A stretch of 63,239 bases of DNA, the filler included, from Neoconidiobolus thromboides FSU 785 (lineage: Eukaryota > Fungi > Entomophthoromycota): assembly GCA_025603075.1 (NCBI GenBank). It is 7 parts of 7 records of this genome, joined end to end, with 100 filler letters (N's around TTAATTAATTAA, not from the genome) between each part and the next. Parts side by side here need not be neighbours in the genome. Positions count along the whole stretch, not along the records: positions 16,972 to 39,334 come from MU626534.1; 6 more parts are not named here. One strand, 5' to 3'. This document shows, in pieces, positions 16,972 through 39,207 of this stretch (positions are counted from its first letter, which is position 1; the number at the start of each line of letters is the position of its first letter). The notes beneath the pieces are model-generated. The model was given only the letters and a program-made list of their open reading frames with translations. It ran no database searches and was not told the DNA's origin. The position numbers and the translations under genes are program-made.

Positions 16972-17061
16972 AACAAACCGGTCCATTAACCTTAAAATAA
17001 TACATCCGTGTTATCAACTCATTTAACGTTTATAATATCATTACATACTATTAACAAGAAG

Positions 17062-17069
17062 TATAAATA
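17062..17069 (+). promoter_or_regulatory. TATA box of the small peptide gene
   Basis: TATAAATA 68 bp upstream of ATG 17130; the paralog has TATAAAT at equivalent spacing (~20154). Confidence 0.5.
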
Positions 17070-17129
17070 GTGGTGGTTTTATCATACTATATAATTATAT
17101 TACATTAGATACAAATTACTATATACAAA

Positions 17130-17255
17130 ATGCAACTTACTTTCCTTATCGCTTACACTGTTTACATTATGTCTGTAATCACTTCAGTTCCTACTAATAA
17201 CCAACCAGCTGCTGATAAACCCAAAGCAATTGAAATCCGTCGTCACTGGCCTTAA
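17130..17255 (+). CDS. 41-aa secreted peptide precursor (signal peptide, pro-region, RR, HWP)
   Basis: MQLTFLIAYTVYIMSVITSVPTNNQPAADKPKAIEIRRHWP*; C-rich codons unlike the flanks; TATA box; homologous copy at 20221. Confidence 0.7.
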   Translation: MQLTFLIAYTVYIMSVITSVPTNNQPAADKPKAIEIRRHWP

Positions 17256-18957
17256 ACATGAAGTCAGATCTTGACTACTATTACCTGGATATTCATTTAT
17301 AAATAAATAGGATATTTGAAAAAATAATATTTTTTGTCTTTTTATATCAAAATTTGTGTTTTTTATTGCTTATAATAGATAAATATTACTATTTAATAAC
17401 AATAGATCATTTAAATAAGCGAGCTTCTATGCTTTATAGTCTTCATTATAATATCTAAACCAGAAACTTTACTATTTAACTAAAAAAACACCTACTTAAT
17501 TTGTAGCTAGTTTCTAAAAAATTGTAATTTACCACCATGAATAAATCCAACTTAACATTGTCATTGAGCATTGTAATATCTAGAAGCACCGATGTCAAAA
17601 ACTGCTTTAGTATTTGTGTTCCTTCTATTATCTAATAAGCTAGAAACTATAACCATTTATTCGCCTAAACCTAATCAATGGAGTAGTGTAAGATTATTAA
17701 TATATATGTCTTCTCCAAAAAAAGGTCTGGGGTTATAGAGATCCGTTTGGTAGGGGGTACTGACTAAGTAAGTAGTTTTTTTTTACTGCAAAGAATTCCT
17801 ATTTTGGGCAGAATTTTATTCTAAATAAAAAAACTAATATCTAGAATAGAAACATAGCTGTTGTATACTTTTAATAAGGTTAAACTAGGGAGTTTAGGGT
17901 TAGGGGTAGTATTTATATTCAATTAAATTTAACCTAAAATTTGTCTGATAAAAAGCAATACTTTACCAAAAAAAGTACTATCTACCCACTTATTGCCATC
18001 TGTTATACGTTCAACAGCTTTAGTATGTTTTTTGACTGCAGTGATTCCCTTTACACGCGATTTAGGTATAAAAGATAACATGATACATGCAATTTAGAAG
18101 TCAAAGTTATATAAGTCAGTGCTAATTACAGCACTTGTGAATTATTTTTCTGATAACGAAGTTTTGAATTAGATACTATTAAATTGATTCCTTTACTTTA
18201 TGAAGTTTTTGTAGTTTGTTATTTTAAATTAGCATTTAATCTTATTTTATATAGTATTTAGTGAGATGATTCTATTGATTAAATTTAGTTATCAACCTTT
18301 TCTTAGATTACTCCTCCCTATTGAAGATTTAGTTTATTCAAAAAAACCAAAGATGGGAACAAAATAACCACATAAAAGAAAAATCAATCAGGAGCCCTAT
18401 ACCTATTGGAAGCTGGTAAAGTAACTGTTTTTTCCCAGTTAAGCGGCTAAAACGAAGAGAATTGACTATTAAAGGAATTAATTTGGTTACGAATGAAAAA
18501 AGTTTTTCCTATAGTAGCTTTTTCCATCCAAAGACTAGAACTTACTTAGATGGTGATAAAGAGATAAAGTAACAAAAGAGCTTATTGAAGATCCTTTGAA
18601 TAATTTACACAGTATATAAAGCTATAAAAAGTTTATTAAAGTTGTCTAACTCAATAATTAAAATAAGAGTAAAATCAAAAGACAATGACCATGATAGAGG
18701 ACAATCAAATTTAATGTTAAAAGCAAAACTACAGGCATAGTAGGAATCTTGGATGAAATAATATGGTATAAAGTTATTTTATATATATTATTTAAAAGCA
18801 GAATAAAATATTAAGCTATTATTAGTTTTAAAAAAATCTCAAAATAGGGCAAGTCTTAAATGGTTCATCATTTTAGTTTTGAAGGTAAATACAAAGAGTA
18901 AATAAAAGAGATAATAAGATATATACAGAGAACGAAATAAATCTAGTGCTATTAATT

Positions 18958-19920
18958 TTAGTTTGGTAACTCTCTATTACCTTCGATTACAATCTTCATA
19001 TCAGTTATTTTTTTAGAATATATCTTTTCAAATGATTGAATCAAATCTTCATTAAAATCATGAGAATATCGGAATGCAACTGATTTTTCGTTATTATATG
19101 GATTAAACATATCAGTAGATTTAGTTATAATTGGATACATTACTCATTCAAATGGTCGATTCCTCTTTGTTCTTTGTTTATAATAGATTGATAAGATCAA
19201 AAGTATTAGAAAAGCTACACCTGTAGAGCCGCCTAGACTAAATTCCATTGATTTATTAGCATTGCTACTATCCTTAGTATTATTTCTTATTATTGTAATA
19301 TAGTACATACTTTACCAGTTCTACAATAACAAAAAATAATAAATTAACGACAATACACCAAGTATTAGTATCAATTGATTAAATTCTATCACTGTCAACA
19401 AATCCGAGCAATTGAGTAAAAAAGTTAAGCTATTAATTATAATACGCCATACAACCAAAATCTAAACTGAAAGTAAAGTTTGCTTCTTCGAGATTAAGGG
19501 AACTGGTATTTAATTTATAAGGGCCTAAATTTACAGCAACTGTAGATTGAAATAAATAGAATTTTCCACTTTTACTATTTTAATTGTTTCATTCTTTCTT
19601 GAATTGTTAAATTTATTAATAGTTAATATACCATTTAATAAATTATATCCATATGGCTGGTGAAATTTTATTCGTGATTGATAACTAAACTCACTCTTTG
19701 ATTCAAAATAATTAATCTTATCATTTAATGTGGACATTTCGCCCCTAGTAACTACTCAAGTATTAAATAATGTCTTTAATTCGTTTGTTTCAATCTTATA
19801 TGATGTTAAAAGTGATGTTTTAAAGTCTCTCTCATTATCATATATACCACCAATATAAAATTGGTTTAAATTCAAACCATTTTGTATATTGAAAGTATAC
19901 TAATATATAGCATCTGCTAT
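18958..19920 (-). pseudogene. Decayed Kelch-like/TM protein gene
   Basis: Stop-interrupted frames: QFYIGGIYD..SYKIETNELK (Kelch-like), then FSLGGSTGVAFLILLILSIYYKQRTKRNR (TM + basic). 5' limit uncertain. Confidence 0.5.
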
Positions 19921-20220
19921 CATACTATGATCATTATTTAATTTACTAATATTATAATAACTAACGAATGATCCTTTATTTTTAGGCTAATGAAAGTTAA
20001 TAATTGTATCACTTTTTTTACCAAGATAATAAGAATATGAGGATGTGCTTTTGTGTTTAAGTTTTAAACAAACTACTTTATTAATATTAAATTAATACAT
20101 TTATACTATCAACTTTAATTAAAGTTTTATTATAAATTATAATATCATTAAAATATAAATATTAAAGATTTTATTATCTTGTAAAATTATATTATATTAT
20201 ATACGTTACTTACAAATCCA

Positions 20221-20351
20221 ATGTGACTTACTTTCTTTATTGCTTATATTGTTTATATTCTATCTATAATCATTTAATTTTTATTAATAACTAGCTAGCT
20301 ATTAATATAGCTAATGCAATGTAATTAAAATTTGCTATCACTGACTTTAAA
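20221..20351 (+). pseudogene. Degenerate paralog of the 17130 peptide gene
   Basis: ATG TGA CTT ACT TTC TTT ATT GCT TAT ATT GTT TAT aligns with ATG CAA CTT ACT TTC CTT ATC GCT TAC ACT GTT TAC; ends tcactgactttaaacat vs tcactggccttaaacat. Confidence 0.8.
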
Positions 20352-20581
20352 CATTAAATTAAACCTTATATTGTTATTAATTAAAAATTAGAGTGAATTT
20401 TCTGATTTTTATTATTAATAAATATAATGTAATATCTATAAAATCAAGAAAAAAGGTTATATATTGAAATATTGAAGATGCTAAAAATAAATATTTTAAT
20501 TAACTATAAATATTTGAATATTTAAAATAGTTTATTAACTTTATTAAAGAAAATAAAAATTAATAATAAAAATTAATAAAT

Positions 20582-21988
20582 TTATTTTAAAATTTGATTA
20601 ATAAATTGTAATATTTTTTGTTTGGCATCTACTACTTCTAATTGATCATTACTATCTGGTTTATAGATATCCATTGAATGTGAGCCATTAATAACATTAA
20701 TAATTTTCATTGAATCATATGTTGAATTAATAATAGATAATGAAGACCAAGGATCTAATTGACCATTAACTAATAATAAATTATTAACTTTAATATTTTT
20801 ACTGTTATAATTTAAATTTGTTTTTGTTACATTTAATATTAAATTATTATTAATTCCAAATGTATTTTTACAATAGAATTCCATATTAAAATTAATAGTT
20901 AATAATTTCGATCTTACTGGTAATTGATTTAATGGGGCTGTTTGCCAATATCCAAATTCAGTACAACATTGATACATCCATTGTCTAAAAGCATCTCCAC
21001 GATTCGGTTTTTCAATTGAATTGTATTTTAAATAATTGAAATCCTCTCCGCATTTCTTGTTATTTAAACGGAGTTTAAAATCTCTAATAAAATCTTCAAA
21101 CTTTTCTTTTGATGTCCCATTTAACATTAATGAATTACAATAATTTTTTAAATTATTTTTTTCATTATATTGAACTAAAGCAGATAAATATAAAAAAGCT
21201 AAACCAAACTCATCATCTTTAACAGTTTCACATGTGAATCTCTTTTTCAATTCATACTTCTCTTCTATACTTCCATTCAATAATATATTATTAATAAATT
21301 CAAAGTTTTCTAAATGATAATTTAAACATGATTGTCCTCCGTGAGTTAATAATGCTTTTTGAACCATTAAATCATATTCAAAGAAATCTATTTTAGCTTC
21401 TAATGCAGCTGATGAAGCAATAGCCCCATGAAATGTATCTGGATACTTGTATTTTGCCCAAGCAGCTAAATTCCCTGCATAACTAGCGCCATGTAAAATC
21501 CATTGAGTATTCTTATTTTTCTCACTTATATTTTTAACAAAATTAACAATATCTAAAATAGCTAATTCAGATGTTAGATATTTTAAACTATTTAAAGATA
21601 AATCTTGTTTTGGATAAGATTCACCATAGAATCGATGTTCTAATGCATAGATAATACCTCCTTGTTGTTCTGCTGCCGTTGTTAAGATTGAATTAGTCGT
21701 CCAATAATCCCCATATAATTCTCCTTCCGCACCAATAAATAAGAAAGCTGGACCTCCAGGACGATAATATTGATCATTTATAAAATAACGTTGGGACCAA
21801 TAACCAGATTCTAATTCAGAATTATTATGGGATAAAGATTGATTAAACCATAATTGTTGTACTGAATTAAGTAATCGACTATTATGAGCTAATTGAGTAG
21901 GTGATGGATCTCTGTATTTAAAATATAAGAAATTGCTATGAATGAACAGTGGAAATAAGAAGAAAAGGAGATTATAAATTGGATTCAT
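20582..21988 (-). CDS. Secreted serine peptidase, family S28 (prolyl carboxypeptidase/DPP7-like), intronless
   Basis: Signal peptide; QRYFIN, GGPAFLFIGAEG, LEHRFYGES, nucleophile HGASYAG, QCCTEFGYWQT, NGQLDPW, SHSMD. Confidence 0.92.
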   Translation of the reverse strand: MNPIYNLLFFLFPLFIHSNFLYFKYRDPSPTQLAHNSRLLNSVQQLWFNQSLSHNNSELESGYWSQRYFINDQYYRPGGPAFLFIGAEGELYGDYWTTNSILTTAAEQQGGIIYALEHRFYGESYPKQDLSLNSLKYLTSELAILDIVNFVKNISEKNKNTQWILHGASYAGNLAAWAKYKYPDTFHGAIASSAALEAKIDFFEYDLMVQKALLTHGGQSCLNYHLENFEFINNILLNGSIEEKYELKKRFTCETVKDDEFGLAFLYLSALVQYNEKNNLKNYCNSLMLNGTSKEKFEDFIRDFKLRLNNKKCGEDFNYLKYNSIEKPNRGDAFRQWMYQCCTEFGYWQTAPLNQLPVRSKLLTINFNMEFYCKNTFGINNNLILNVTKTNLNYNSKNIKVNNLLLVNGQLDPWSSLSIINSTYDSMKIINVINGSHSMDIYKPDSNDQLEVVDAKQKILQFINQILK

Positions 21989-22860
21989 TTTTCTTTAATT
22001 TTGATTTTAATTAAAATAGAAATCAATGCAATTTGAATTCATTTTTATATTAATTTATACTAATTTATTGAAACTTATTGAAATTTAGATTCCTATTTAT
22101 GTTATTCTTTAGATGAGAAAATGATATATTTTATAATTAGATTACTTGTTTATTCTATAAAACACAACAAGTTATTAAGCTTGTGCTTGCATCTTCAGTC
22201 TATATTAAAAGCGATAATTAGTTATTACAGATAAATAGTAATATTTACTAGTATATTGAATTATCAATTGGATAATAAGCCTATGATTTATGTAATGAAA
22301 ATAGTTCGTATTTTATTTATCTTAGGTTTGGCAAGGGATTGATTACTATTTTTATTCAATTTATAATTAACCGTTTTTATAAAATTTTTTAATATTCTTA
22401 GGTCTAAAACAATTAAATCGCTTTTTTTATTTATCTTATCAAAGTATAAATGATTAGAAATTACAAAACTAATCCTTCAAAAAGGACTTTTATTATTTGA
22501 TTTAATATTAAATAGTTTAATAACATGGGGTTTGTTTTTTTAGTTTCATTACTTTTTCCATTTTTAAGCGCTATTTGAGTGGAAGGATTCCCAATAAAAT
22601 TCTTAAATATAAAAATAAATCCTCATATATTATTTCTTTTATTTTACCTTATCAAACACTAATTAAAATGTCATTTGTTATCTATTTATCAGCAGGAAAT
22701 ACTTTATAAAAATGTAGTATTATTTTATTTAAATATTTAAATGATAATATGATATAAAGCTAATAATAATAAAGCAAAATTAGTTGATATTTACTTTTAT
22801 TAAAAAAGATTTAATTAAATAACTTAATTACTTAATTATCTTTCTTTAAAATTAGAAAAT

Positions 22861-22959
22861 GGGGATGTTTTTTTTGGTTTCATTATTTTTTCCATCTTTT
22901 AAGCGCTATTTGAGTAAAAAAATTGTTAGTAAAATTCTTAAATACAAAAATACATCCCT
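22861..22959 (-). mobile_element. MITE copy
   Basis: AAAT direct repeat on both flanks. Confidence 0.85.
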
Positions 22960-24413
22960 AAATATTATAAGTTCACTATAAATTTTTGTAATTTTTATTA
23001 AAAAAATAATTTAAGAGTATAATCTAATGCCTTTTTGACTGCTTAACAAGGTAATAGTTTTAATACTAAATTATTATACTTTTAAGTTTTATAAACTTTT
23101 AATAAATTTTACATTAATGATCAAAAACTAAGTTATAAAGCAAATTAAAAGTAATACAAAAATAAGTTAAATATGAAATTCAGAGTATAATGTAGCTTTT
23201 TAGTTGCTTATGTTAATAGGAGCTTAAATCCAAGTTATTCTTTTGTTGATGATTTTATAGTGATAAGTACTATCTAACCTGTTCTCACTTCTGAAGCATT
23301 TCAACTTAGCTCTATTCTAATTTTAATAAAAAAACAAAATGTCATCTTGAAATTAGTTTATTGAACTTTTTAAGCTCATATTTCAAGAAAAAGTTAACTC
23401 AAAATGAATAGAGAAACTGGTTGAAGTAGAGTAGAGTAGAGTTGAATTATTACACTCATAAGATCTATTTCAATAATCAGTTTATCTTCAATTAAAGCAA
23501 TAGCTTTAAGACCAAAAAACAAGTAACTGATGATACATCAATAATATTCTTTAAAAAATATTATTTTTTTAAGTAATTAGAAAACTTCAACTACATTAAT
23601 AATATTCAACATCTTACTACAGCTCTATATTGTAATATCAACATTCTAAACAAAGTAAATATACATCGAATTATTTTAAAGTAACGTGGTATTGAAGAAT
23701 TTAATTCAACAAACCAATGAAATGAAAGATTTAAAATTAAGGTTTTTATTTTATAAAATAGTATTAAATATTAATAATAAACTATTTCAATTTGAATCCC
23801 TCTTTTTATAAATAAAAGTTGATCTATTAGATGACACTCTTTGTATTAGTAAAAGGAGTTAGTTAGCTTGTATATTACTTCTTTTTTTGTATTTATAGGT
23901 TTAAAATACATTGAGTTGGTATTATTTTAATAATAAAATATAAGTTATAGATGATAAGAGTGAATAAATTAAGTTCTTAATTTAAAATCAAGCAATGTTA
24001 TAATATCATTAAGAACTAACAAATAACAGCCTTAATACTATAAGCTTAACATTTAACTTAATAACTTTAATAACACTAATAATATTAAATAATTAAAATT
24101 ACCTTATATAGTAATAATGATGGGATGTATCAATGTTTGATAATACAAATGGGGGTGTTTTTTTATTTCATCACTTTTTCCATCTTTTAAGCACTATTTG
24201 AGTAGAAAGCTATTAGTAAAATTCTTCAACAAAAAACACATCTCAAATGTTATTTCTAAATATAATTTAAATGTTCGCGAAACAACGATAATAATGAATT
24301 CAATTAATTAGTTAAATTCAATTACTAAATTAAGCTTTTATAGAATTTCAATTTATTAATTGAACTATACTATAAATAAAAAATAAATAAAAACTGAGAA
24401 TCCATTTTCACTA

Positions 24414-25322
24414 ATGTTTAGATCACAATTTACAGAGTATATGTTACAATACTATGCTAACTCACTATCCATAATAGTAACATTATATTCATTACTTTTA
24501 TTTATTACTGTATCTTTTATCAACAATCGAGTCAACAATAATATACCTTATTTAATTTCCGTATTCATATTAATAAGTGATTTATTATATTCAATATGTC
24601 AAATAGGGTTTATATTTATTGATTTGCCACCAATAGCGTGTAAAATCTATCAATGGATGGAAATTTTATCCATATCCTTATCAATGTTTTATGCAGCTAC
24701 TATATCAATTATATTCTTATTAGCAATCAAATATGAACTAAGATTAACTTTAACAATGAGGGTATTAACGTACAGTATAGCACCAATACTATCTATAATA
24801 TTAAGTACATTGCCACTAGCTTTTGATAGGATAAGGACAGCAGATGGATGTGGCTTTAATATGAAAAACAATGGAGTTGTTTGGATTTTAGCTACTAAGT
24901 TTGGAGCTACTTTTATTACCGTGTTTATATGTCCCATTATTTATATTGTAATCATCTACTATTTAGCATTAAAGAAGCGCATGTTAAGTCGATCAGGAAT
25001 CGGTAGTGGAAGTAATGGCTCTTCAATACAATATAGAGCCTTTATACGACTATTCATTTATCCATTAATACCTTTAATTAGCTATGTGTTTTATATGGTT
25101 GTGTTTATATTTGCTATCTTTAAAATTGAATTGAATAAGATGACCGTTTCTACTATTGGTGATATTGGCGCCTTTTTTTCTGGTTTACAAGGTTTTTTTA
25201 ATTCACTACTATTTTTAACTAATAGTATCTTTTTAAAAGAAATTAATCAAGTGGGAGAATGGTATAGCGATTCTTCCTTCTTTGATAAAACTTACTTTAT
25301 TAAATTGAAACAATCTAATTGA
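24414..25322 (+). CDS. 7-TM G-protein-coupled receptor (cAMP-receptor-like/Git3-like), intronless
   Basis: Seven hydrophobic segments; TM2 ISDLL, Cys before TM3 and in ECL2, TM6 RLFIYPLIP, TM7 LQGFFNSLLF. Confidence 0.85.
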   Translation: MFRSQFTEYMLQYYANSLSIIVTLYSLLLFITVSFINNRVNNNIPYLISVFILISDLLYSICQIGFIFIDLPPIACKIYQWMEILSISLSMFYAATISIIFLLAIKYELRLTLTMRVLTYSIAPILSIILSTLPLAFDRIRTADGCGFNMKNNGVVWILATKFGATFITVFICPIIYIVIIYYLALKKRMLSRSGIGSGSNGSSIQYRAFIRLFIYPLIPLISYVFYMVVFIFAIFKIELNKMTVSTIGDIGAFFSGLQGFFNSLLFLTNSIFLKEINQVGEWYSDSSFFDKTYFIKLKQSN

Positions 25323-25748
25323 TTAATGTCAATAATAATTTAAAAGCTGGTCTTTAAATTACTATTGTTATTGTTATTTAGGTTTAAATGATAAAATTTT
25401 CCACAACATTTAGTTAAAGTAAAGGAGAATTGAAAATTCAAATATCTCAATATCATTATTTTGACTCCAAGTTGCATTGTAAAGCATGATTATAACATCA
25501 CAACCTCATTTTAAATAATATACAAGGATGTACTTTTTTGTAACAATTTTACTAATAATCTTTGTGTTCAAACAACCTTTAAAAAAATGAAAAAAGTGAT
25601 AAAACCAAAAAAAGACATCTCTGTACATTTCTTTTTCATCTAAGTTTATTAATAAATATTGAATATTTATACTAATTTATTTATTTTGCTTATTTTATAA
25701 AACAAATTTTCTATTTAAATCTTACATATTGTTTCAAGTTAATTATAT

Positions 25749-25846
25749 GGGGATGTATTTTTGTGTCTAAGAATTTTACTAACACATTTTCTGCTTAAAT
25801 AGCGCTTGAAAAATGGAAAAAATAATGAAGTCAAAAAAACACTCCC
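25749..25846 (+). mobile_element. MITE copy
   Basis: Full length, ATAT flanks. Confidence 0.85.
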
Positions 25847-28800
25847 ATATTCTTCATTAAATGTCAAAAACAAAAACATCAATGAGACCAGTATAAACCC
25901 GTTATTTAGATTATATAAGAATGGACCTAAGGAAATTAAGCATTGATTTAATCTAATTTTAAATTAGAATCATAGTTCAGATATTAATGTGTTTTAGCAA
26001 CAAAAGCATTTTATGGATAACTAGTTTTGTAAACTGGATATTCATTATAAATAAAAGTAGCTTATTGAGATAATGAGTTACTAAATGTTATTGCCACCTC
26101 AAATTTATAAAGAATTGGAAGCAGACCCAATTTCTTTATAATATAACTAATTTCATTGTTCTAACTATCAATGATTTCGACAATTTTATTAATAATCTTC
26201 CATAACAGTATTAGTAATACTAGAACAAAATGACTTGCTTCAGAGAAAAAGTATCCTTCAAATCTTGCTCTATGGAAACGTAAAAGTATCCAACTGTCTT
26301 TATGAAGTGATTGCACTGATTACTCCAGTTGATTATTGAACTGGAAATATCAAATATATATGTATCCTACTTTGCCCTTTAGGGGGAATAAAACCTTATC
26401 AAGTTGAGGTATTTTACTTGGGACAGTATTTCAAGCCCCACTTTTATTAATAGTTTAACAGATATATGATCAGCTCTTCAAACCCAAGGTAGAAAACAAA
26501 AATTAATATAAAATAAATACTTTAGAAGTTTCCATTTAAAAGGTAATTTACAAATCAAACATATATAGCAGATCAAGATTTTATAGCTTTAAAACCCATT
26601 AAAAATTGTGGTCCAGAAATTTAAACCTTGAATGGATGTATTGATTTTGTACTGAGTTTGGTTAACGGCAGATCACTTCATCATAAAAATAAAATTCTAT
26701 TAGATTATGTTGATTAATTAGTTCATTTCATAAAGTTAATATAGACAAAGATGTATTTAATTCAAAGATAAAAAATTTACCAAATAGTACTAAATCAATG
26801 AATGATTAATGCCAAAAGAAACTTTTTATTAACTATTTGATGTTTATGAATCAAGAACTAAATCCTTTGATGTTACTTTTTATTCTTAACTTCACTAGTG
26901 AATCAGTGTCATTAATAGTGATTAAAGTCAAATCCTACTGCTCATATATTACATTGTTTCTTTCCAATGATTGAAAGGAAATGCTTTAAGCCGAGGAAAA
27001 ATTTGCTACATTTATTAATTTTATTTTGGTATAATCTGAACTTAAATATTCAAGAGTATCTAAAGTATATGTAGCTAAAAAATAAAGTTTTAAAATAATC
27101 AAAGTTATACTATACTCGTTTTTACTAATATATAAGCCAACCGGTTATGGAATAAGGTAAATGGATTATACATACATATAAATAAATATGCATATGGGTA
27201 AATTTAAGGCCAATGTCCAGGAGGACCTTCGTCGTTACCAACAACTGTAGTTTTTGGAATAACGGGATTATCATGAGCAACAAGATAAGAATTAATTGAT
27301 AAAACAGATAGGGCAAATGCGAAGATTAAATTGAAGTTCATCTTTTAATTATTATTTTTAAATGAAAAAGTTTGTTTTCAAAATAACTCAAAAACCATTT
27401 GACCTTTTGGGTTTATATATTTGTTCCAGACTAGGACTGTAGATGTTACAATATAGCATAAACAGGTTTAATGCAAGAATATTAATGTCTTTGTTTTTTA
27501 TACTGGTTAAAATGGAGCTTATTGAGCCCATGTGTAATAAATTCATCTACCTATTTAAAAATCTTTAGTCCAATTTAATTAAACTATTATCAAAAATAGA
27601 ACTGTTTTTCCGTATATTCCATTCTAGAACCATGTAATTCCGATTTTTATATATTTTATAGCGTTGACTATACAAACAAATCACTTATATAATGTGATAT
27701 TAATGAACAATTGCGTTTTCGACTAAAATTTATCCATAATTTGGATATTATATAAATTTATCATCCTAATAATTATAATAATTGAAAGAAAAAACTGATT
27801 TTAATGTATGTTGGAATATAAATTATCGCCAAATCCACTTTGAGCTTTATAGATACTATAAACTTTAAAAAGTAAATCAGGACCACTGTAATAATAGGAT
27901 GTTACATTCCTACCTACAATTAGAAATTGAATTCTGTGATATACCTCATGATCAAAGTAAGACTTAATCCAAGAGAGTGGTATTAATTTAAGCTTTTTAT
28001 TTGTATCAAACATATGAGGATGTAATTTTGTGTTTAAGAGTTTCACTAACAATTTTTCCACTCAAATAGCAGTTAAAAGATAGAAAAGGTGATGAAGCTA
28101 AAAAACACCCCTATATTTTGTCTATTTAGTAAACAAATGCTTATAGACTTTAATAAATAAGCGCCTGCTAGTATTTCCAATTTGCTGTATATTAATTAAC
28201 AGTGTGGAATAGTTATAGAATTAATATAGTGGCATCTTATTAATTATTAAATAACACATGTTTTGTAGATATTATAAATAGCCTACACAATCTTAATTAA
28301 ATGCATCAAAACTAGTATTATGCTATTACATTTAGTTTTATCTTACAAAAAAGAGCTAAAGAATATTTTATGTTACTAAGCTGATGTATGTTCTATATAA
28401 AAATTCGAACAAATAAATTAATTTTAATATATTAAAAAAACGACATGTAGAAGCAATAGTATAAAATCAAATTACTAAAATTACTAAACATTAAAAAGAC
28501 TTATTTTTATTATTATCATGAGATTTTAATAGTATTCCATTAATAAAATAGTTTACAATTAATCTCATATTTAAAACTGAAAACAAAATTTGTATAGTTT
28601 TTATTCAAAAAAGCATATGGATGTGTGTTCTGCCGTTATGATCTGTTTCATTTATTATACAATATAAAGATAGGCAACTAACAGATATTAAAAAAAAGCT
28701 AATAACGCTCCTATATCACTTCACACTTGGATCCAATATATAAAGTCAGATAAAAATCAACTAAAATACATTTTGATCTGGTTAAGACCAGTAACCCTTA

Positions 28801-30248
28801 AATTATGCTACCTTCGATTAATTGCCTGATTCATATCTCACTTGTGTCCACAGTACTTTCATGCTTAACTCATCTTTAACTCACCTTTTCTCTATTTCCC
28901 TTTTTGATAAACCTTGTACTTATAAAACAGATGATTGAGAACCTCCAGTTCTTTCAAGATATCAAAAGAAAAATATTCTTTTATTTTTTCATTAAAAAAA
29001 TAAAGATATTATAAATAAACATTTTTGTAACCATATGAAGATGTTTTTTTAGTTTCATTGCTTTTTCCATCTTTTAAGCATTATTTTAGTGGAAAAATCG
29101 TTAGTAAAATACTTTAAAAAAATACATCCCCATATATAATATACCTTTTTTTAATAAATTAAACAAATACTACAAAACCTTACTACAAAAATTACTAACT
29201 GTTTTATAAAGTTATTTCTTACTTGTCTTGTTCATAAAGTTTCTAACAAACCTTAATCCTTAATTTCGGATTGATAATAATTATATTAACCAGTAATTAT
29301 TTTTTGGCTCTTAAATGCCATTCAAGATAACTTCGTAAATAAGCTCAAATTAAAACACTTACAAATGCTAGTTTTATGGATGTACAATTAAGATAGTTTG
29401 AAGACATTAAATCTTAGGGACTTATATACTTGATTGAAACTAAGTTACAAGCATCAATATATATATACTGGTTTATATATCAGAGTCTTTTTCTGCCAGT
29501 TATCTTTAAATTTGCTTGATTCCTATATGTAAAAAAAAATTGATTTTTATAAATGATACCCCAATTTGTACCTTACAATCATTGAGGTTTCAAAAATAAA
29601 ATACCAATAAAAATGATTAAATATGAAATCGCTTTTCATATTCCAAAATAGATATAATACAATAAGAGTCTTTGTTCTAATTATAAAGCCCATTTCCTTC
29701 AGCTTTACCGTAGTTTGAAACCTTCAAAACTTTATACAAAAAATATCAATTCATCTTATATATAGTAAATGCTTGTTTAAGGTAGCATATTCTAGAGTTT
29801 CATGAAATTTGTTCTATTTATTTAGAAGTATGTTTATAATATAACCTTATAATTTTTTATATCATTGATAGTCATTATGTCTTTATACAAGTTTATCTAC
29901 TGATCACTAGTATATAAGGAAGATATGCTATTAATTTAACTAAATTTGTTCATTCACGGAACCTGAGATCCGAAACTTTAGAAAATACATGAAATAAAAA
30001 TGCATTGGTTTTTTTACCTTTCAAAAAATTATCACTATTGATATAAGTATAGTAAAATGTATTGAATAAATTAGTTTAATACTAAAGAGGATGTTTTTTT
30101 TATTCCATTACTTTTTCCATTTTTAAGCGCTATTTAAGCGGAAAGATTGTAGAAAAATTCTTAAACAAGGTACATCCCCAATGTTAAATATCGAATTATT
30201 TTTAAGCCCTCAAAATGGTATATATATTTTTAAAAACCTAACTTATAA

Positions 30249-30320
30249 GGCTTAGTGGTCTAGTGGTATGATTCTCGCTTTGGGTGCGAGAGGCCCTGGG
30301 TTCAATTCCCAGCTGAGCCC
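30249..30320 (+). tRNA. tRNA-Pro(TGG)
   Basis: GGCTTAG/CTGAGCC acceptor stem; CTCGC-TTTGGGT-GCGAG anticodon arm. Confidence 0.95.
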
Positions 30321-32903
30321 TATTTTTTTGATTTAACCCTTTTGCTATAAATCTGACTTTGAATTTTAGAAACAAATAGAGACCGTTTTTAATTTTATTG
30401 CTTTTTCCTGAGATAAAAATATTTTATAAAAAGACAACACTCCAGTGACATAATTAAGAAAAACCTATACAACTAAAGTAATAACTTTAGTTAATGTATT
30501 CTTATAAAGCTTTATCTATTTGATAGTGAATCTGCAATGTTGGTTATAAAGTAGTCAATAATAAATATTTCTCAATAAACTACTTTAATGCTATAAATGC
30601 ATCATTGGTATATTACTAAGTTAATAAATAACTGCATGGAAGGGAGTGGTTGGCCCCAAAGCTATAATTAACCATCGATTTATAGTACAAGTAATATAAT
30701 AATAGTTTTTATTACTACAACTACTCGCTCTTTGACTATTTATTAACTTAAGTAATATTAACATTTAACAATTGATTTCTATCATTTAACAAACTACTTA
30801 GTAAACATCGAAATTTTTAAATTCTCTGTTATTTTAGTAAGATAAGCTGAGATTGATCTTTTAATTTTTCTATTTTCTATAGACTCTATAACTTTAATTG
30901 GAACTATATCGCTTTTTTTTGATGTATCAGATACTGAATAACAGTGTAGCTTATTGTTATGTTTAATAAAGTGTAGATGCTTCTTAATACCTTGCATTTC
31001 TATTGTTCTTTTTGTATTTTTGTTTCTTTTATATTTTTAAAAAATTATATCTGTTTTCCCATTATTAACAGTCAAGTTATTAATCCTATTATGTTCGCAA
31101 ATAAAAGTCTCAAATCTTGAAATTAATTGATTAATATCTTCTATTTTATCTAATGCTTTAAAACCACTTTTCCATTGTGAAAGATTTCCAAAATGTCTAT
31201 CAACTATACTTTTTACATGATGCTCAGTAAAGAAATTAAGATCAATATTTAAACTGCTATTTATTTTAGGAATTTGTTTAAATATATAGGGATGTATTTT
31301 TATGTTCAAGAATTTTATTAACAATTTTTCTGCTCAAATAGTGTTTAAAAGATGAAAAAAGTAACGAAGCCAAAAAAACATTCCCATATAATGTAGGAAC
31401 TCTTGAGATTTAAAATGATTTCCTGTATCTGCCCATATATTAATTTTGTAAACTTTAAATAAAAGCTTTGTGGAAATCAAATCAATTAAACATTCTACAT
31501 ATACCGGAATCATGATTTAATGTTTCAGATAAATAGCCAAAATAAACTTTCGTTGTTATTTTAACATCTTTTAAATACGAAACATCAAACCATAATACTA
31601 ACATAGCTTGTTTCTTATAATGATCTGAATATATTGTGTTCGGTCTTGTTCCTATTTCCATATTCTGTTTAAAATTTAAAACTATTATACGACTTTTATT
31701 GTTTAATTTTTTGATAGTTTCATTAAATATGTTTTTTGAGTATCAACGCAAAATTGCGATATCGTTTTGTCAGCTCTATGATTGATTATGACATAATAAT
31801 CACTTAAGTCGCTATGTCCTCGAGTTCAGACACAATCAATCCCATGTTCTTATTTTGATTTACTATTAGAATTTCTAACTTTATCCTAAAAAATACCATC
31901 CTTTCATTTTGATATCTATATTTATCGGAGTATAGAAGAAATTTCAGAATATACCAATTCAGAACTTTTTTAACTGGATTATTCCCTCATATCTTGTACC
32001 TTTAATAAAGCCAGTAAATTCCCCTAATAATGTTTTATGTAGATTTTACAGTAGTATTGTCTATTCTATCTGTCTTGCATAGTCTGTAACATATTACATG
32101 CTACTTTCATAATTCGAGTAGAGTATATGAGGATGGTTTTTTTTGTTTTGTTACTTTTTCCATGTTTCAAGCGCTATCCGAGCGGAAAAATTGTTAGTAA
32201 AATTGTTAAATAAAAAAACACATCCCGGTATCTTAGTCACATAAACTAAGACCTTTCGGCTTATAGCTAGCCAATTAAGCAATGACTATTTTTGATTTCA
32301 ACTACTGGGTAACCAGATTTCACATTTATTAAATAATAGCTATTATTATATAGAGGTATTTTTTGACTTCATCACTTTTTTCATCCTTTTAAGCGCTATT
32401 TGAGTGGAAAAATTGTTAATAAAATTCTTGAACATAAAAATACATCCCTATATATTAGTTTGATTCTAACAAAAACTTTAATAAGATTTTGAATTTTATT
32501 GTAAATTATAAAGCTTTTTTTAATTTTACTAATTTTAATATAAGGATGTTTTTTTATTCTATTACTTTTCTTATCCTTTAGATACTATTTAAAAAGATTA
32601 GTAGTAAAATTTTAAATGATAATAAACTAAAATTTAAGCATTTATTTAAAAAATGATTTATTAGTAACATTTCTTATTTCTAACTTTGAAGTTAAAAATT
32701 AAGCAAGTACCTTTGAAAATTTATCATATAATTAAATGATTCAAATTTACAACATAATTACATGCTAAACAATTAAATGACCCCTACAATAATTCTAAAA
32801 TTGTTATCTAAATGAAGCTGTAATTGATTAATTTTAGAAGAGACCCCTTAAAGTCTGTCAAAGAATAATATGTACCTATTATTAGCTACAATGATGTATC
32901 TTA

Positions 32904-32976
32904 GGGGTAGTAGCTCAATCGGTAGAGTACTCGCTTTGCATGCGAGGGGCACGGGGATCGAAACCCTGCTACTCCA
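32904..32976 (+). tRNA. tRNA-Ala(TGC)
   Basis: GGGGTAG/CTACTCC with G3:U70; CTCGC-TTTGCAT-GCGAG; ATCGA T-loop typical of eukaryotic tRNA-Ala. Confidence 0.95.
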
Positions 32977-33014
32977 GCTATTTTTATAGCCTTGTTTCTT
33001 TGGGTACAAAATAT

Positions 33015-33112
33015 GGGGATGTATTTTTTTGTCTAGGAATTTACTAACAATCTTTCTGTTCAAATAGCGTTTAAAAGATGAAAAAAATAATGAAATCAAA
33101 AAAACACCCCCC
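33015..33112 (+). mobile_element. MITE copy 38 bp downstream of tRNA-Ala
   Basis: ATAT flanks, full TIRs. Confidence 0.85.
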
Positions 33113-33711
33113 ATATGGTATACTAAGAATCTATCTATAATTTCAAATAAAATTGTTTAATTAGAATTTTGCCTTTATTAAGTATCAATCTATTAAGCTT
33201 ATTATATACATGAGAATGTATTTTTGTGTTTAAGAATTTTACTAATAATTTTTCCACTCAAATAGCGCTTGAAAGGTAAAAAAAGTGATAAAGTCAAAAA
33301 AAAGCATCCTCATGTATTTTTTATTTTCCATCTCCTCATATCTTTGATATTAGTCTCATACACTCTTTGTCAAAATCTACCTTTTTTCTCTTGGTCTTTG
33401 GTAAATGTCAAGAGTTTTATAGCCTTTCTGTTGAAAACGAAGACTAGGCACTTCTGGTATCCATTGTATCTCTTATCTGATTGGAAAAATATTCAAAGAC
33501 TTGAGGTTAAGCGGGATATCTTTGCCTGATCAAGTTCCAAAAAAGTAGAAGCATACTGGGAGAAGTTCTCACCCTTTATAATAACTCCCTCACTAAAGCT
33601 TATATGTAGTGACAGCGCTTTATACAATTCTTTATCTTAATAAATTAAGCACTTGAGACTTCACCCTTTCAAAAAAATTACTGGCTTGCTAAATTATTAA
33701 TATAAGCATAT

Positions 33712-33809
33712 GGGGATGTATTTTTGTGTCTAAGAATTTTACTAACAATTTTTCCGCTTAAATAGCACTTAAAAAATGGAAAAAATAATGAAGTCAAAAA
33801 AACACTCCC
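33712..33809 (+). mobile_element. MITE copy
   Basis: ATAT flanks, full length. Confidence 0.85.
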
Positions 33810-36285
33810 ATATTTTGTTTCTAAGCCCTTGAGGCTAAATCAAGAGTCAAATAAAATTTAAATTTTTTAAATACATATATTCATATATAGCTATGTTTAT
33901 TTGGTAAAAAACAACTTCTTGATAGTCATCTAAAGTTGAGTGCAGTGTCTAGGGCCAATGACCGCGAGTTTTAAAGCCATAGGTTTGATCAGCAGCAGGT
34001 TGGTTGTTAATAGGGACTGAAGTGATTACAGACATAGTGTAAACGGTGTAAGCGATAAGAAAAGTAAGTTGCATTGTATTTATAAGTAATTTGTATCTAA
34101 TTTAATATAATATTATAGGATAGTAAAGCGACTACTATTTATACTTCTTAATCCCACTGTATACCTGTATTATAAATGTAAAAGGAGTTCATACTATGGA
34201 CATATCAAATTGAGCTTAATGGATCGCTTTGTTTATAACTTAAATTATATTGATAACACATGGTATGTTATAACGCATTGTTGTTGACTGAGTACCGTAC
34301 CGAATTATTTTTATAATATTAAACTTTTATTACCTATCCTTTATATGAACTTTTTACGTTTGTGTTTATTAATTATCTAAATAAAAGTAAGCTAACTTTT
34401 ATGCACCCTGTAATAGATTATTTAAATCTAGAGTTTATTTGATTTTATAATATTATCCCGACTTTGTTAACTAATAGAGAGTAAATAATAACTAGCTCAA
34501 TTTTCCTTTTATTCATTATTCATCTACATATCAATGTTATGAATAAAACAATATAAACAGTTAAATAAAGTTATAGAATGTTGCTTTGGCTTATAAGGGA
34601 CATAAAATATAATTTTTTATTAGGATTATTATTTAGATTTGTTTCATTTTAGTCTTACAAAAATTTTGATATCAATTGAATAAATAAATATAAAAAACTT
34701 GAGTTTTTTAACAAAAATTAAGTCATCTTAAAATTTTAAATTTAAAAAATTCTTTGTAAACTAATAAATTCAAAAGGGGGTTACCCACAAAAAAACTAGT
34801 ATAATATATTTGAGATTTTTATTTAAAAAGTATTCAATACAAAACAATAAAAAGCTTACGGCTTACATCTTTAAAACTAAAATCGTAGAGTATATATAAT
34901 TATTTAATGACTTACTAATGGTGTCTCGGCAACATGGTTTCAATAATAGATGTTTATAAATATCTATAAATAAATCATAAAAAAAGTTATTGCTAAGATA
35001 ATAATTAATTAAACAGGTTATTTAATTAAGTCTAGTTTCATACTGATAAAGATCAGAGATGATCGCTATAGAATAAAATAAGTTTAAATCTTCTTTATTG
35101 TAAAATACCTTATATATTTAGCCCCTTATGAATAATTTTCACTTGTATTTGAAAACGTACTCGATTTAGTCCTATTCAAGTTAGTTATATGGGTATTGTT
35201 TATTAGTTTACTTTCTTAATATAATTAATGAGCCACGGGTTGAATTACAAGCCTAATGATAATTTAGATGTAGAATCAGTATTGTTCAAATTTAAGTTTA
35301 TAACACAAAGTATTAATAACTTGAATAAAGCGTGTTTTTTTCTCAATACTGTAAAAGTTAAAATTTGAATTGGAGGTAGTAACCAGCTAAGTATGAAACA
35401 TTTCAAACAAAAAAGGCCATTTTTAGAGTTTAATTCCAATCGAAAAAACCAAATGTTGAATTAAATAGTTACTACTAACTTTTAATAAAGTTAGATTAGG
35501 CTCAAGTTAGAGATAGGATGTAAGTTTAAAATTCATTAGTAATTTATTTCATATAAACCTATACTTTATTAAAAAAATTGTACCTATTTGACCATTGTAC
35601 CCTACCGTTGACATTAAAGTTATGTCTGAGGCCCTTTACAGTATCCATTGTGTTTTGCAGACCGTAGCCGCGTTTTAGGAAAAACATTTCAATTGAAAAA
35701 AAACTGAGGCAATTTTTGTTGAAAGCTGTAATGAAAATAGGTTCAGTTTCAATTTGACTAATAGAACAAGTTATACCTAGATGTCATTTGCTAACTGTAA
35801 TTTATAACTAGTTTTTTTCAGCATGAAATAAGAGTTAAAGTTTTAATATCATTGGATTACACTATAGGTTTTTTTAACCATAAATTAAAATATTTAATTA
35901 TAGCCACTCCAAGATCATTAAATTTTAATTTTTTGACTGGGATTTTGCTAATAGGGCGTTTATATAGTGTTATAAAAGGTAGAAATAATAATTCATAAAA
36001 TAAAGTAACTTTAGTATCAATTTTTTGTGTCACAAAAATTGATTCTTTATCCAAAACTTAATAAAGAATACTACCCTGTTCAATAGAGTACCATTGTCTA
36101 TTTATTAGAAAGGTTACAAAGGTTAATAAAGAGACTAAATTCTTATAAACAGCAAAGCGAATTAGATTTATTTTTATAGTATTCTACTTTATTCTTAAAA
36201 ATCAATAAAGCTTACTGATCAAATATTTGTGTACAATACCTTATAATTCGTTTATATAATATTAATTACAGCAATTATTATTAAA

Positions 36286-37656
36286 ATGTTTTTTTTGCTC
36301 TATTAGTTTATCTTTTAATGTTCAGTTCGCTATTCGTTGTTTTTTTCTTTTCATAGAGTTATTGCATATTTGCCAAGGTTACAAGACGGAGGATGCATTG
36401 TAGTTCAAGACAAAGTGTATTATTTAGGTGGGTATACATATACACCTAATATGAAAGAAGCAGGAGACCAAAACCATAATGTATTTACGTTAAATCTAAG
36501 AAGTGGGCTTAAAGGGATCGATAATTCGATGGAATGGGAAATAAATGAAGTAGCTAATCATCCAAGAATAGGCACAATCTTACTTTTTTATTCTACAACT
36601 GAGAATGGAATAAGAACTATTGGAAGCATTTACCAGAGTAGATTTAAAAAATGGCTATTATTTAACTCCCTTAGTATTGAAAAAAATGAATGGTATGGTG
36701 AAGATGGTATTGAAAGTATGTATCTGGAGTCTATTACAGATAGTAAGGGAAATATAGCATGTTATTAGAGATATTTTATCTTGCAAGATGAGAATAGGGA
36801 TAAATTGTTTTATGTTTCTGGCTATTGTTTCAATATAGAAACTAAGGAAATCAAACCTATATTTGAGCCGCCCCATAATATGATCATCCATCAATTATTT
36901 ATTTTAAATAATAAACTGTATTATTTTTTAGATTTAGGGTTGGAAGATCGTAAGAAAAGTGGTCAAAATAAGCTATATGAATTGGATTTGAAGTCAAAGG
37001 ATGTAAAAGAATATGATATAAAAATCAAACACAATGATCATTTTGAGCCCATAAAATATAATCAATCAATTTATTTTATTGGGTATGAAAAAGGTGAAGA
37101 TGCTAATTTTTTAGGTGACGTGTATGAGTTAAAGTTGGGTCCGTTTTCATTTAAAAAGATAAAACAAATTAGAATAAGTAACAATGAGTGTTTTTCTGTT
37201 TATAAGGATTATCTAATAAACTCATTTGGTTTATATTTTATTAGTAAAGAAAGGAAAAAATCAGTAGAAAGCTCAAATAAAATATTACTAACAAATATGT
37301 CTAATTGGGGATAAATTGATTATCTACCTTCATCATTAAGTAATAGTAATTATGATAAACAAGCAAATCATAATGATTACAGCAATATAGAAATAGGATA
37401 CACTGTTAGTTTTTAAATATAAGCTATAATAATAACTTCAATCGTCTTATTGATGTTTTATAAGTATAGAAAGAAGAAAGGAAGACCGCCGAGTATAATA
37501 ACCGATAGTATTGTCATTGAATCTATTAGCCCTTTAAATTATAAATATGACCATCACAGTATAGATCTTTTTAGTTATTCTCAACAGATTGATAACCATA
37601 GTACTATATTACCTGTTAAAATAGAACTTAAAGTAAATAGAGTTGTCTATGACTAA
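36286..37656 (+). pseudogene. Signal peptide-Kelch propeller-TM protein, disrupted
   Basis: ORFs 36337, 36781 and 37450 lie in one frame separated by in-frame stops (36766, 37312 and two near 37415); KVYYLGGY, SIYFIGY Kelch-like motifs; TM then KYRKKK; 5' frameshift in a T-run. Confidence 0.7.
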
Positions 37657-38667
37657 AAGTATAAACTTTCCTTTGGTCAAATACTTAATGATAGGTCTGA
37701 GTCCAAAACGTATCTAATATGAACTCAATACCTTCTGCTGTACTCAAAAAGTCTAAAGATCAATTTACATATTGGTCTTCCAAAGAAATATGGTTTTGTC
37801 TGAGAACCCTCCTAGATACCAGGGCATAAATTTCATTTTCTATTTTAAATATAACGCTTGCCTCCATTAAGAACTTCTTTAATGCACACTGATTTTGTAT
37901 TAAATCTATGATTTTGACCTAGTAAAACAATAAAATGCTTATAGACAAAATATACATACTCAGAAGGAGTTCATGGATTATCAAATATTAATTTAATGGA
38001 TCAATAATGTTTTTTAAGTGATTTAAAGTATTTCATACTTAGCTTACAAATATTTAATAATATTGTGTCAAAAGGACCTTTTTACAACATTGTGCCTCTG
38101 TTATCATATTATCTAAAGATTTTGTATTAGCAGTCCCCATAGTTTTCACTTTAATAAAACCTCTTTCCGTATAACCATTACCCCCACTGCTTTTACTTGG
38201 GATTTTATTATATGTGGATATATTTTTACGTTTAAGAATTTTACTGACAAATTTCCCTCTCAAATGATGCTTAAAAAATGGGAAAAATAGCGAAGTCAAA
38301 AAAACACCCCTCTATATACTAAACCAAATCAACCGTAAAACTTTAACTTATTCATAGCCCAGGTTGAAATATCTATTTTCTCAGAAGTCAAACTTCCCAT
38401 CCACAGCTTAGTCAATCAATAAGGAGGGCTTTTTAAGATCTTGTTTATTTCAATGAAAATAGTTATTTGGTTATAAATATAGTTATAATTGAGTATTGTT
38501 TTTTATTAAATTAATTCAAATTTTCAAAGTTTCGAGTAATCTAACAAAGCAATATAAATTATAGGAACTACTTTTATAGCCTGTACTTCAAATATTTAAA
38601 TATTCATTATATTTTACTTTTATTACATTTATATTTGTTATTTTGTTTGATTTATCAGTGAGTATTT

Positions 38668-38765
38668 GGGGCTGTTTTTTTTGATTTCATTATTTTTCCG
38701 TTTTTTAAGCACTATTTGAGTGGAAAATTTGTTAGTAAAATTCTTAAACACAAAAATACATCCTC
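38668..38765 (-). mobile_element. MITE copy
   Basis: ATTT direct repeat on both flanks. Confidence 0.85.
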
Positions 38766-39003
38766 ATTTTATGCTTATAAATTATAGTTTATTTTAACTA
38801 TATAATTTAAAACATGGTTGTTAGCTTTATTTAAGATTATAATGCTATATAAACAGTTATCTTTCTTGAAATATAATGTTTTACTATATAGCTAAATCCT
38901 AAACTTTATTTACGTCCTCAGCTTTTTACTATAAAATATTTTTTGTTTTTTAGTTATATTAAATGATTTCTCAATATAAATTTTGATATCTAATTAAATA
39001 TAT

Positions 39004-39207
39004 GGGGATGTATTTTTACGTTTAAGAATTTTACTAATAAATTTTCCGCTCAAATAGCGCTTAAAAGGTGGAAAAAGTAATGAAATGAAAAAAATCATCC
39101 CCATATAGTGATGTGTTTTTTGTTTAGTAATTTTACTATTAATCTTTCATCCCAAATTGTACTTAAAAAACGGAAAAAATAAAGAAACCAAAAAAAACAC
39201 CTTCTTC
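39004..39207 (+). mobile_element. Two tandem MITE copies sharing one ATAT
   Basis: 39004-39102 (intact) and 39107-39207 (degenerate). Confidence 0.75.

Follow-up and report, generated by a model that had tools for sequence, protein, structure and literature searches.

Do a short peptide gene, a proline-specific peptidase gene and a receptor gene that lie side by side in a fungal genome form a signaling system, or are they neighbors of independent function? The question is raised by a contig of Neoconidiobolus thromboides FSU 785 (assembly GCA_025603075.1), examined here as part of a window, namely the whole 63,239-nucleotide stretch of DNA that was analyzed, in which seven parts of seven records are joined end to end with 100 filler letters between each part and the next. 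The part in question, positions 16972-39334 of the window, comes from MU626534.1 and is called C277 according to the numbering of contigs used in this analysis; the genome examined is the assembly of 24.6 Mb, with 799 contigs and 25% GC. A first-pass annotation had described, within 8.2 kb of this contig, a micropeptide precursor (hereafter pepA), a serine peptidase of family S28 and a seven-transmembrane (7-TM) G-protein-coupled receptor (GPCR), and had proposed that they represent a ligand, its processing or degrading enzyme and its receptor. All three open reading frames (ORFs) were found intact where that annotation had placed them (table 1) and, since each of them is one unbroken frame, their description as intronless holds as well. 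The results of our analysis lead us to favor, with a confidence only somewhat above even, a different explanation, namely that three real and functionally independent genes have become neighbors within an island of birth-and-death evolution. The durable new result is an unannotated family of micropeptides ending in HWP, together with its pattern of selection.

The product of pepA is a real, selected precursor and a member of this new gene family, which in the present genome comprises five distinct intact genes (pepA to pepE) plus one relic. Because one of these, pepB, lies on the same contig, the three genes first described remain intact but are not the only intact ones there. The pepA protein consists of a hydrophobic, signal-like N-terminus, the leader NNQPA, a variable core of 11 residues and a C-terminal HWP directly before the stop; all five intact genes agree in their length of exactly 41 codons and in where the stop lies. 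When the copies are aligned, 19 positions are invariant, distributed among the hydrophobic N-terminus, NNQPA and the last three residues HWP, while the 11 residues between NNQPA and HWP are almost free to vary. For codons 1-27 the ratio of nonsynonymous to synonymous differences per site (pN/pS, Nei-Gojobori) is 0.29, whereas the core gives 1.37, figures that are descriptive and do not amount to a test of positive selection because the sample is small; in the HWP codons the ratio is 0, with synonymous changes present and nonsynonymous ones absent. The prolines previously listed for the precursor (VP, QP, KP and WP) are all present in pepA, but conservation throughout the family is limited to QP within NNQPA and WP at the end, given that VP is absent from one copy and KP is restricted to pepA.

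It might be argued that these 41-codon frames, instead of being genes, are a conserved part of some repetitive non-coding element, since they lack annotation, the unit has been duplicated along with about 0.5 kb of flank and the genome, with its 25% GC, is rich in short dispersed repeats. The frames are also absent from protein collections: none of the five peptides occurs in a collection of 15 billion proteins, and a word-index search with the peptide alignment among proteins of 23-72 amino acids retrieved no relatives. Further searches gave no match for the peptide in Pfam, no usable lead in the ESM Atlas and, by six-frame profile search of this genome, no members beyond those already known. 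However, five diverged copies keep the 41 codons and the stop, the sole decayed copy being the one with several stops; changes in the leader are mostly synonymous, and HWP has been kept through synonymous changes. Moreover, the GC content of the peptide coding sequences is 39-42% versus 26-28% for the neighboring S28 and GPCR genes, and a TATA box and an AATAAA motif are correctly placed around the frames. A non-coding origin is thus very improbable.

The hydrophobic residues 3-19 indicate that the precursor is probably secreted. Removal of the hydrophobic first 19 residues would leave a Cys-free 22-mer, and additional trimming after the invariant NNQP may produce a 15-mer ending in HWP. Three known types of precursor were considered for the family and rejected. 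An α-factor-type precursor does not agree with a single 41-residue unit having no tandem copies, in which the dibasic RR is found in pepA only, its counterparts being RG, HP or HR. A precursor of a-factor or other lipopeptide pheromones is incompatible with copies that end in HWP-stop instead of CAAX, and with a receptor that has no STE3 match. Precursors of MSDIN type (the amatoxin/phallotoxin family), which belong to the peptides made by ribosomes and modified after translation (RiPPs), share the proline between leader and core and the terminal proline; here, however, the follower is absent, the N-terminus resembles a signal and the protease belongs to family S28, not S9A.

The peptide genes carry their own control signals. 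A TATA box (AGTATAAATAG) lies about 65 nt and a second motif (TTAGATACAAAT) about 20 nt upstream of the pepA ATG, both being conserved in the peptide copies, and the combined promoter pattern was found in the whole genome at peptide genes only (0 control matches); within the window, the promoter 15-mer is present at pepA and pepB alone. Homology between the copies extends upstream for 450-650 nt, which can be aligned at 68-74% and contain no conserved ORF, and stops shortly past the AATAAA motif, thereby defining a duplicated unit of about 0.6-0.8 kb. The pepB gene shows 76% identity with pepA and forms with its flanks a 288-nt inverted repeat with it. The decayed second precursor that had been reported is indeed a full-length copy with several stops, having 70% identity to the pepA unit across 312 nt and a match to the peptide profile that covers positions 1-17, including a TGA. 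The GC content of this relic is 16%, and when it is compared with pepA, C>T or G>A changes make up 50 of 89 differences. The relic exemplifies neutral decay at this locus, of a kind compatible with deamination-driven (repeat-induced point mutation-like or methylation-linked) erosion of duplicated DNA. (The relic lies in the most AT-rich kilobase of the contig, 19972-20971, with 17% GC; values along the contig range from 17% to 29%.)

The assignment of the second gene to family S28 is certain from its sequence, which matches Pfam PF05577 (Peptidase_S28) with E=1.4e-86 and 291.5 bits (cut-off 25) over profile positions 10-434 of 434. The protein contains the nucleophile motif GASYAG (GxSYxG in the family), a segment NGQ.DPW that aligns to the prolyl endoprotease of Aspergillus niger (An-PEP) and, near the C-terminus, a segment GSHSMD, a candidate site of the catalytic His. 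Its hydrophobic N-terminus suggests that the enzyme is probably secreted. Enzymes of family S28 cleave at proline, PRCP acting at Pro-X C-termini and DPP7 removing X-Pro dipeptides. The gene in the window encodes a full-length member of the family that includes An-PEP, human PRCP and DPP2/DPP7 (MEROPS S28); its closest solved structure is An-PEP (3e-28; partial alignment, residues 45-261), with which PRCP and DPP2 nearly tie (3e-28 to 5e-26), so that the endo, carboxy or dipeptidyl mode of cleavage is not assignable from sequence. In phylogenetic trees the protein forms the longest branch of its seven-member clade. Most likely, it would be a secreted prolyl endo- or exopeptidase digesting proline-rich proteins.

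The product of the third gene is a GPCR-fold receptor, as judged from its predicted structure. A direct Pfam search returned no match at E<=1, neither to Dicty_CAR nor to STE3 (PF02076), but an AlphaFold2 model built on 11 paralogues has seven long helices (pLDDT 80, pTM 0.77), and all 50 of the 50 Foldseek matches listed for it are GPCRs, with TM-scores of 0.54-0.70, mostly 0.6-0.7, normalized to the model. C76 in TM3 and C146 in extracellular loop 2 (ECL2) are invariant in the 11 paralogues and would form a disulfide; the model also places two short strands in ECL2. TM7 contains a QGF.N motif, of which QG...N resembles that of class B receptors, and, in a comparison with solved structures, the profile of the 11 paralogues matches the glucagon receptor (E=4e-4). 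Both termini are very short and, with almost no N-terminal domain, any ligand would have to bind to the helical bundle and loops.

When compared with 1.8 billion representative sequences, the same profile matched 1101 proteins. The nearest of these outside the genome are from Basidiobolus, Syncephalis and Glomeromycota (best E=1e-35 against the profile), several of which carry the UniRef name 'GPCR family 2 profile 2'. The connection with Dicty_CAR is transitive, since the profile matches one protein, P0015, with 1.8e-27 and P0015 in turn matches PF05462 with 23.2 bits (cut-off 21). Because relatives bear that name and one of them passes the Dicty_CAR threshold, we read the receptor as a divergent, orphan member of the cAMP-receptor-like group (fungal class V, family-2-like), to which its link is thus indirect. 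Compared with the class V cAMP-receptor-like GPCRs (Dicty_CAR) of fungi and the family-2-like GPCRs of early-diverging fungi, the receptor of the window differs in having no Pfam match of its own and very short termini. The genome contains at least 13 intact paralogues, with approximately 15 loci in its 24.6 Mb. (About 600 nt upstream of one distant receptor relative, on MCFE01000614.1 of Basidiobolus meristosporus, there is a called gene, L039:5377-5735, with 77 residues and no match in Pfam.)

How these genes came to lie together can be deduced in part from the contigs bordering C277. The last 294 bp of C347 are 100% identical to the first of C277 (window 16972-17265) and the two contigs therefore join, producing a stretch of 36.5 kb. 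This contains, in order, a kelch-like pseudogene, pepD(-), a GPCR gene(+), a kelch-like gene(+), a DJ-1/PfpI gene(-), pepA(+) and DJ-1 fragments; it continues with the relic, the S28 gene(-), the GPCR gene(+), an S28 fragment, two tRNA genes, pepB(-) and a broken kelch-like gene. A further contig, C468, contains a frameshifted GPCR gene, a DJ-1 fragment (C468:3103-3414, +) situated between this GPCR gene and pepE, then pepE itself and pepC; its ends show 99-99.5% identity with C347:881-1254 and the end of C355. Two small contigs, too, match the 3' flank of pepA at 98% identity. (Of the assembly in this region, it may be observed that breaks fall at sequences 98-100% identical between contigs, and that C468, C355, C662 and C671 share near-identical ends.) Such near-identical ends imply that the locus has been recently duplicated or is present as two haplotypes, and the peptide genes may all belong to a single island or to two haplotypes of it. 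Since the ends of C468, C347 and C355 are nearly identical, recurrences of peptide and GPCR genes in them are not independent. Genes or remnants of DJ-1 stand beside peptide genes at three places, which shows that blocks of several genes were first duplicated and later eroded.

The relative age of the families is informative in this respect. Synonymous differences (pS) between the peptide copies are 0.25-0.52, compared with 0.64-0.81 (saturated) for the peptide-adjacent GPCRs, the amino acid identity of which is 34-38%. The peptide copies are thus of much more recent origin than the receptors, and the two kinds of gene were not duplicated together as cassettes. On these grounds the explanation we favor is that of a repeat-rich island of fast turnover, in which families expanded in this lineage would be duplicated, shuffled and left to decay; the neighborhood would then arise by local birth and death of duplicates and not as a conserved three-part module. 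The peptide unit would have spread inside the island recently, long after its resident receptor paralogues had diverged, while the S28 enzyme and the receptor would each belong to an expanded set, of secreted prolyl peptidases in the one case and of orphan sensors in the other. In Conidiobolus coronatus, S28 genes (named acid prolyl endopeptidase) are expanded to eight and GPCRs to 125 (PMC12387763).

Several observations nevertheless weigh against this explanation. Each of the five peptide genes, like the relic, has a GPCR paralogue at a distance of 1.4-8.6 kb (on C347, C277 and C468), and an S28 gene adjoins the receptor family at three loci (C277, C432 and C318) where about 0.1 would be expected, a value obtained by rough arithmetic under the assumption of uniform placement. 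The GPCR of C277 groups in the tree with the pseudogenes of C432 and C318, with moderate support of 84-87 and long branches, which suggests an old S28-GPCR adjacency. Furthermore, the sole invariant internal proline of the peptides falls exactly at the boundary of leader and core (NNQP/A), where a prolyl endopeptidase would cut, and a Cys-free linear product of 15-22 residues resembles a signaling peptide more than a toxin or antimicrobial. The first-pass annotation had cautioned that linkage could be due to chance in a region of expanded families. The clustering is not random; non-randomness, on the other hand, is not equivalent to function. On both C432 and C318 the S28 gene is intact and the adjoining GPCR is a pseudogene, suggesting that the receptor is dispensable in this association.

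A signaling module, in which HWP peptides would be autocrine, quorum or pheromone-like ligands of the neighboring GPCRs and the S28 enzyme would either mature them after NNQP or degrade them as a 'barrier' protease, is the main alternative. It would account for the proximity of peptide and GPCR genes in three neighborhoods, including the head-to-head arrangement of pepD and the C347 GPCR 2.5 kb apart, and is in keeping with the conserved leader, variable core and invariant HWP of the peptides, their size, which is that of known fungal signaling peptides, and the combination of an invariant leader/core proline with a proline-specific enzyme family. The receptor, for its part, has a GPCR fold with strands predicted in ECL2, the closest solved relatives of its profile are peptide-binding class B receptors, and there is the precedent of Gpe1/Pit2 in Ustilago maydis (bioRxiv 10.1101/2025.09.26.678928). 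Yet the difference in age argues against such a module, and four further GPCR paralogues of clade A (a pair on C9, one each on C8 and C6) lie on contigs that lack a peptide gene, while one of the three peptide-adjacent GPCRs, that of C468, is frameshifted. An S28 gene occurs at one of the three peptide-GPCR neighborhoods, none being found in the remaining two, and elsewhere outlives dead GPCRs, two of the three S28-adjacent receptors being pseudogenes. The promoter motif of the peptide genes is not common to the S28 and GPCR genes, a motif shared by all three having been sought and not found; kelch-like and DJ-1 genes are linked just as tightly; and the contigs may form a single island, in which case the recurrences would not be independent. 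Nor did microsynteny, examined at three distant relatives of the receptor from Basidiobolus and Funneliformis, place an S28 gene beside any of them. The identities of the parts and the recurring linkage of peptide and receptor stand, whereas several results weigh against the module first proposed, among them an S28 component missing elsewhere and mismatched ages. We consider the complete module doubtful; a link between peptide and GPCR is similarly tentative, and a specific role of the S28 enzyme is distinctly less probable.

Two variants of this idea are less probable still than the module. If the S28 enzyme were a dedicated maturation protease of HWP peptides, following the logic of MSDIN peptides and their prolyl oligopeptidase, the products could act on insects or competitors and the GPCR would be a bystander. 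In favor of this, N. thromboides has been characterized as a pathogen of aphids, conserved segments flank the hypervariable core, prolines mark both its border with the leader and the C-terminus, the long S28 branch is compatible with a change of function, and the relic is 240 nt from the S28 gene. However, pepA and the relic are the only peptide genes within 4 kb of an S28 gene, the contigs of pepC, pepD and pepE have no S28 gene, modifying enzymes are not present nearby and the lack of a follower peptide makes transpeptidation impossible; the enzyme's sequence, as said above, fits endo and exo specificity alike. We hold this alternative to be quite unlikely. Scarcely better are the prospects of a locus for peptide-based cell-cell recognition, in which recently diversifying HWP peptides would be read by the neighboring GPCRs, the S28 enzyme would mature them at NNQP/A or destroy them, and C468, C355, C662 and C671, whose ends are 98-99.5% identical, could be divergent haplotypes. 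Its multi-cassette arrangement would recall the B loci of basidiomycetes; the zygomycete-grade group to which this fungus belongs is not known to use peptide pheromones.

Besides these genes, the island contains further elements that are listed in table 1. The DJ-1/PfpI fragments near pepA derive their identification from the intact gene C347:11230-11967(-), which matches Pfam PF01965 with E=1.2e-13. Kelch-like proteins have about 470 residues, a signal-like N-terminus, a weak Pfam Kelch match and a single C-terminal transmembrane segment; at least 64 loci of this family are present in the genome, of which many have stops, and on C9 and C347 its members also adjoin GPCR paralogues. Along the 22 kb of C277 there are, in both orientations, at least 15 copies of a dispersed repeat of about 110 nt (about one per 1.5 kb), and this repeat is present on C468 and C318 too. 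One of its frames reads as a recurring pseudo-ORF, 'FFPFFKRYLS.K..SKIL', and each tRNA gene has a copy within about 100-200 nt (30066-30148; 33005-33116). The repeat looks like a miniature inverted-repeat transposable element or a short interspersed nuclear element, and may drive rearrangements of the island. Another repeat, of 583 nt, connects 30574-31131 with C432:6473-7052 at 85% identity and contains open frames with no Pfam match. The further small open frames of C277 have no match in Pfam, and Rfam finds nothing on this contig except the two tRNA genes.

Table 1. Features of the C277 locus and related loci (window positions, unless a contig label is given)
Feature	Position	Strand	Remarks
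pepA promoter block	17060..17119	+	TATA box AGTATAAATAG and motif TTAGATACAAAT
pepA peptide gene	17130-17255	+	Intact ORF, 41 codons
AATAAA poly(A)-signal-like motif	17300..17310	+	About 47 nt past pepA stop; kept in all copies
Decayed DJ-1/PfpI fragments	17528-18216	-	tblastn with intact C347:11230-11967 gene, 43-45% identity; just downstream of pepA
Relic peptide gene (pseudogene)	20220-20343	+	Full-length, TATA box retained, multiple stops
S28 serine peptidase	20582-21988	-	Intact ORF, 468 aa
7-TM GPCR-fold receptor	24414-25322	+	Intact ORF, 302 aa
S28 pseudogene fragment	26627-27028 (C277:9656-10057)	+	S28 residues 335-467, 32% identity, 8 stops; downstream of GPCR
tRNA-Pro(UGG), tRNA-Ala(UGC)	30249-30320 and 32904-32976		
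pepB peptide gene	33949-34074	-	Intact ORF, 41 codons
Kelch-like gene, probable pseudogene	36319-37650	+	4 in-frame stops; 59% identity to intact C355:4015-5412
110-nt repeat sites	22507-22967, 24130-24255, 25541-25878, 28007-28128, 29029-29142, 30066-30148, 31279-31392, 32117-32457, 33005-33314, 33703-33814, 38203-38773, 38995-39178		
pepC peptide gene	C355		Intact paralogue; near-identical copy at C468 end
pepD peptide gene	C347		Intact paralogue
pepE peptide gene	C468		Intact paralogue
More kelch-like loci	C355:8693-10120, C347:9753-10895		

Most fungal GPCRs are orphans, and none of the receptors of this class in Zoopagomycota has a known ligand. The presence beside orphan receptors of a family of unannotated, probably secreted peptides provides a cheap and concrete hypothesis for ligand finding, and the locus supplies a fungal S28 enzyme with a defined candidate substrate. 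Even if the link between them fails, our results reveal that the annotation of this fungus misses micropeptide genes under selection, and that islands of expanded families can mimic functional clusters.

The locus can finally be compared with known systems of peptide sensing in fungi. In the α-factor system of Saccharomyces, prepro-α-factor, the proteases Kex2, Kex1 and Ste13, the receptor Ste2 and the protease Bar1 are encoded by unlinked genes. The system proposed here would have in common with it a secreted, Cys-free linear peptide, maturation by proteases of the secretory pathway and the cell exterior (including, for α-factor, an X-Pro/X-Ala dipeptidyl aminopeptidase) and sensing by a GPCR; it differs in having no tandem mature repeats, a dibasic site in pepA only and a receptor that is not Ste2. 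Qsp1 of Cryptococcus derives from a very short precursor with a signal peptide, its pro-peptide being cut outside the cell by the serine protease Pqp1 to yield an 11-mer signal. There is no sequence similarity to the HWP peptides, however, and Pqp1 is subtilisin-like instead of S28, while Qsp1 is sensed after import and not by a GPCR. With the B (P/R) loci of basidiomycetes, the island shares several short precursor genes dispersed among diverged GPCR paralogues, and products with variable mature parts and conserved ends, but here the receptor is not STE3, the precursors have a signal peptide and HWP instead of CAAX, and the peptides are younger than the receptors. The GPCR Gpe1 of Ustilago maydis is activated by a peptide that proteases release from the product of the neighboring gene pit2 (bioRxiv 10.1101/2025.09.26.678928). 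In both cases a non-pheromone fungal GPCR gene adjoins a gene for a secreted product, and Gpe1 also has a TM3-ECL2 disulfide; Pit2, however, is a folded effector cut by host cysteine proteases, whereas the candidate elements of N. thromboides are a 41-residue precursor and a fungal S28 enzyme.

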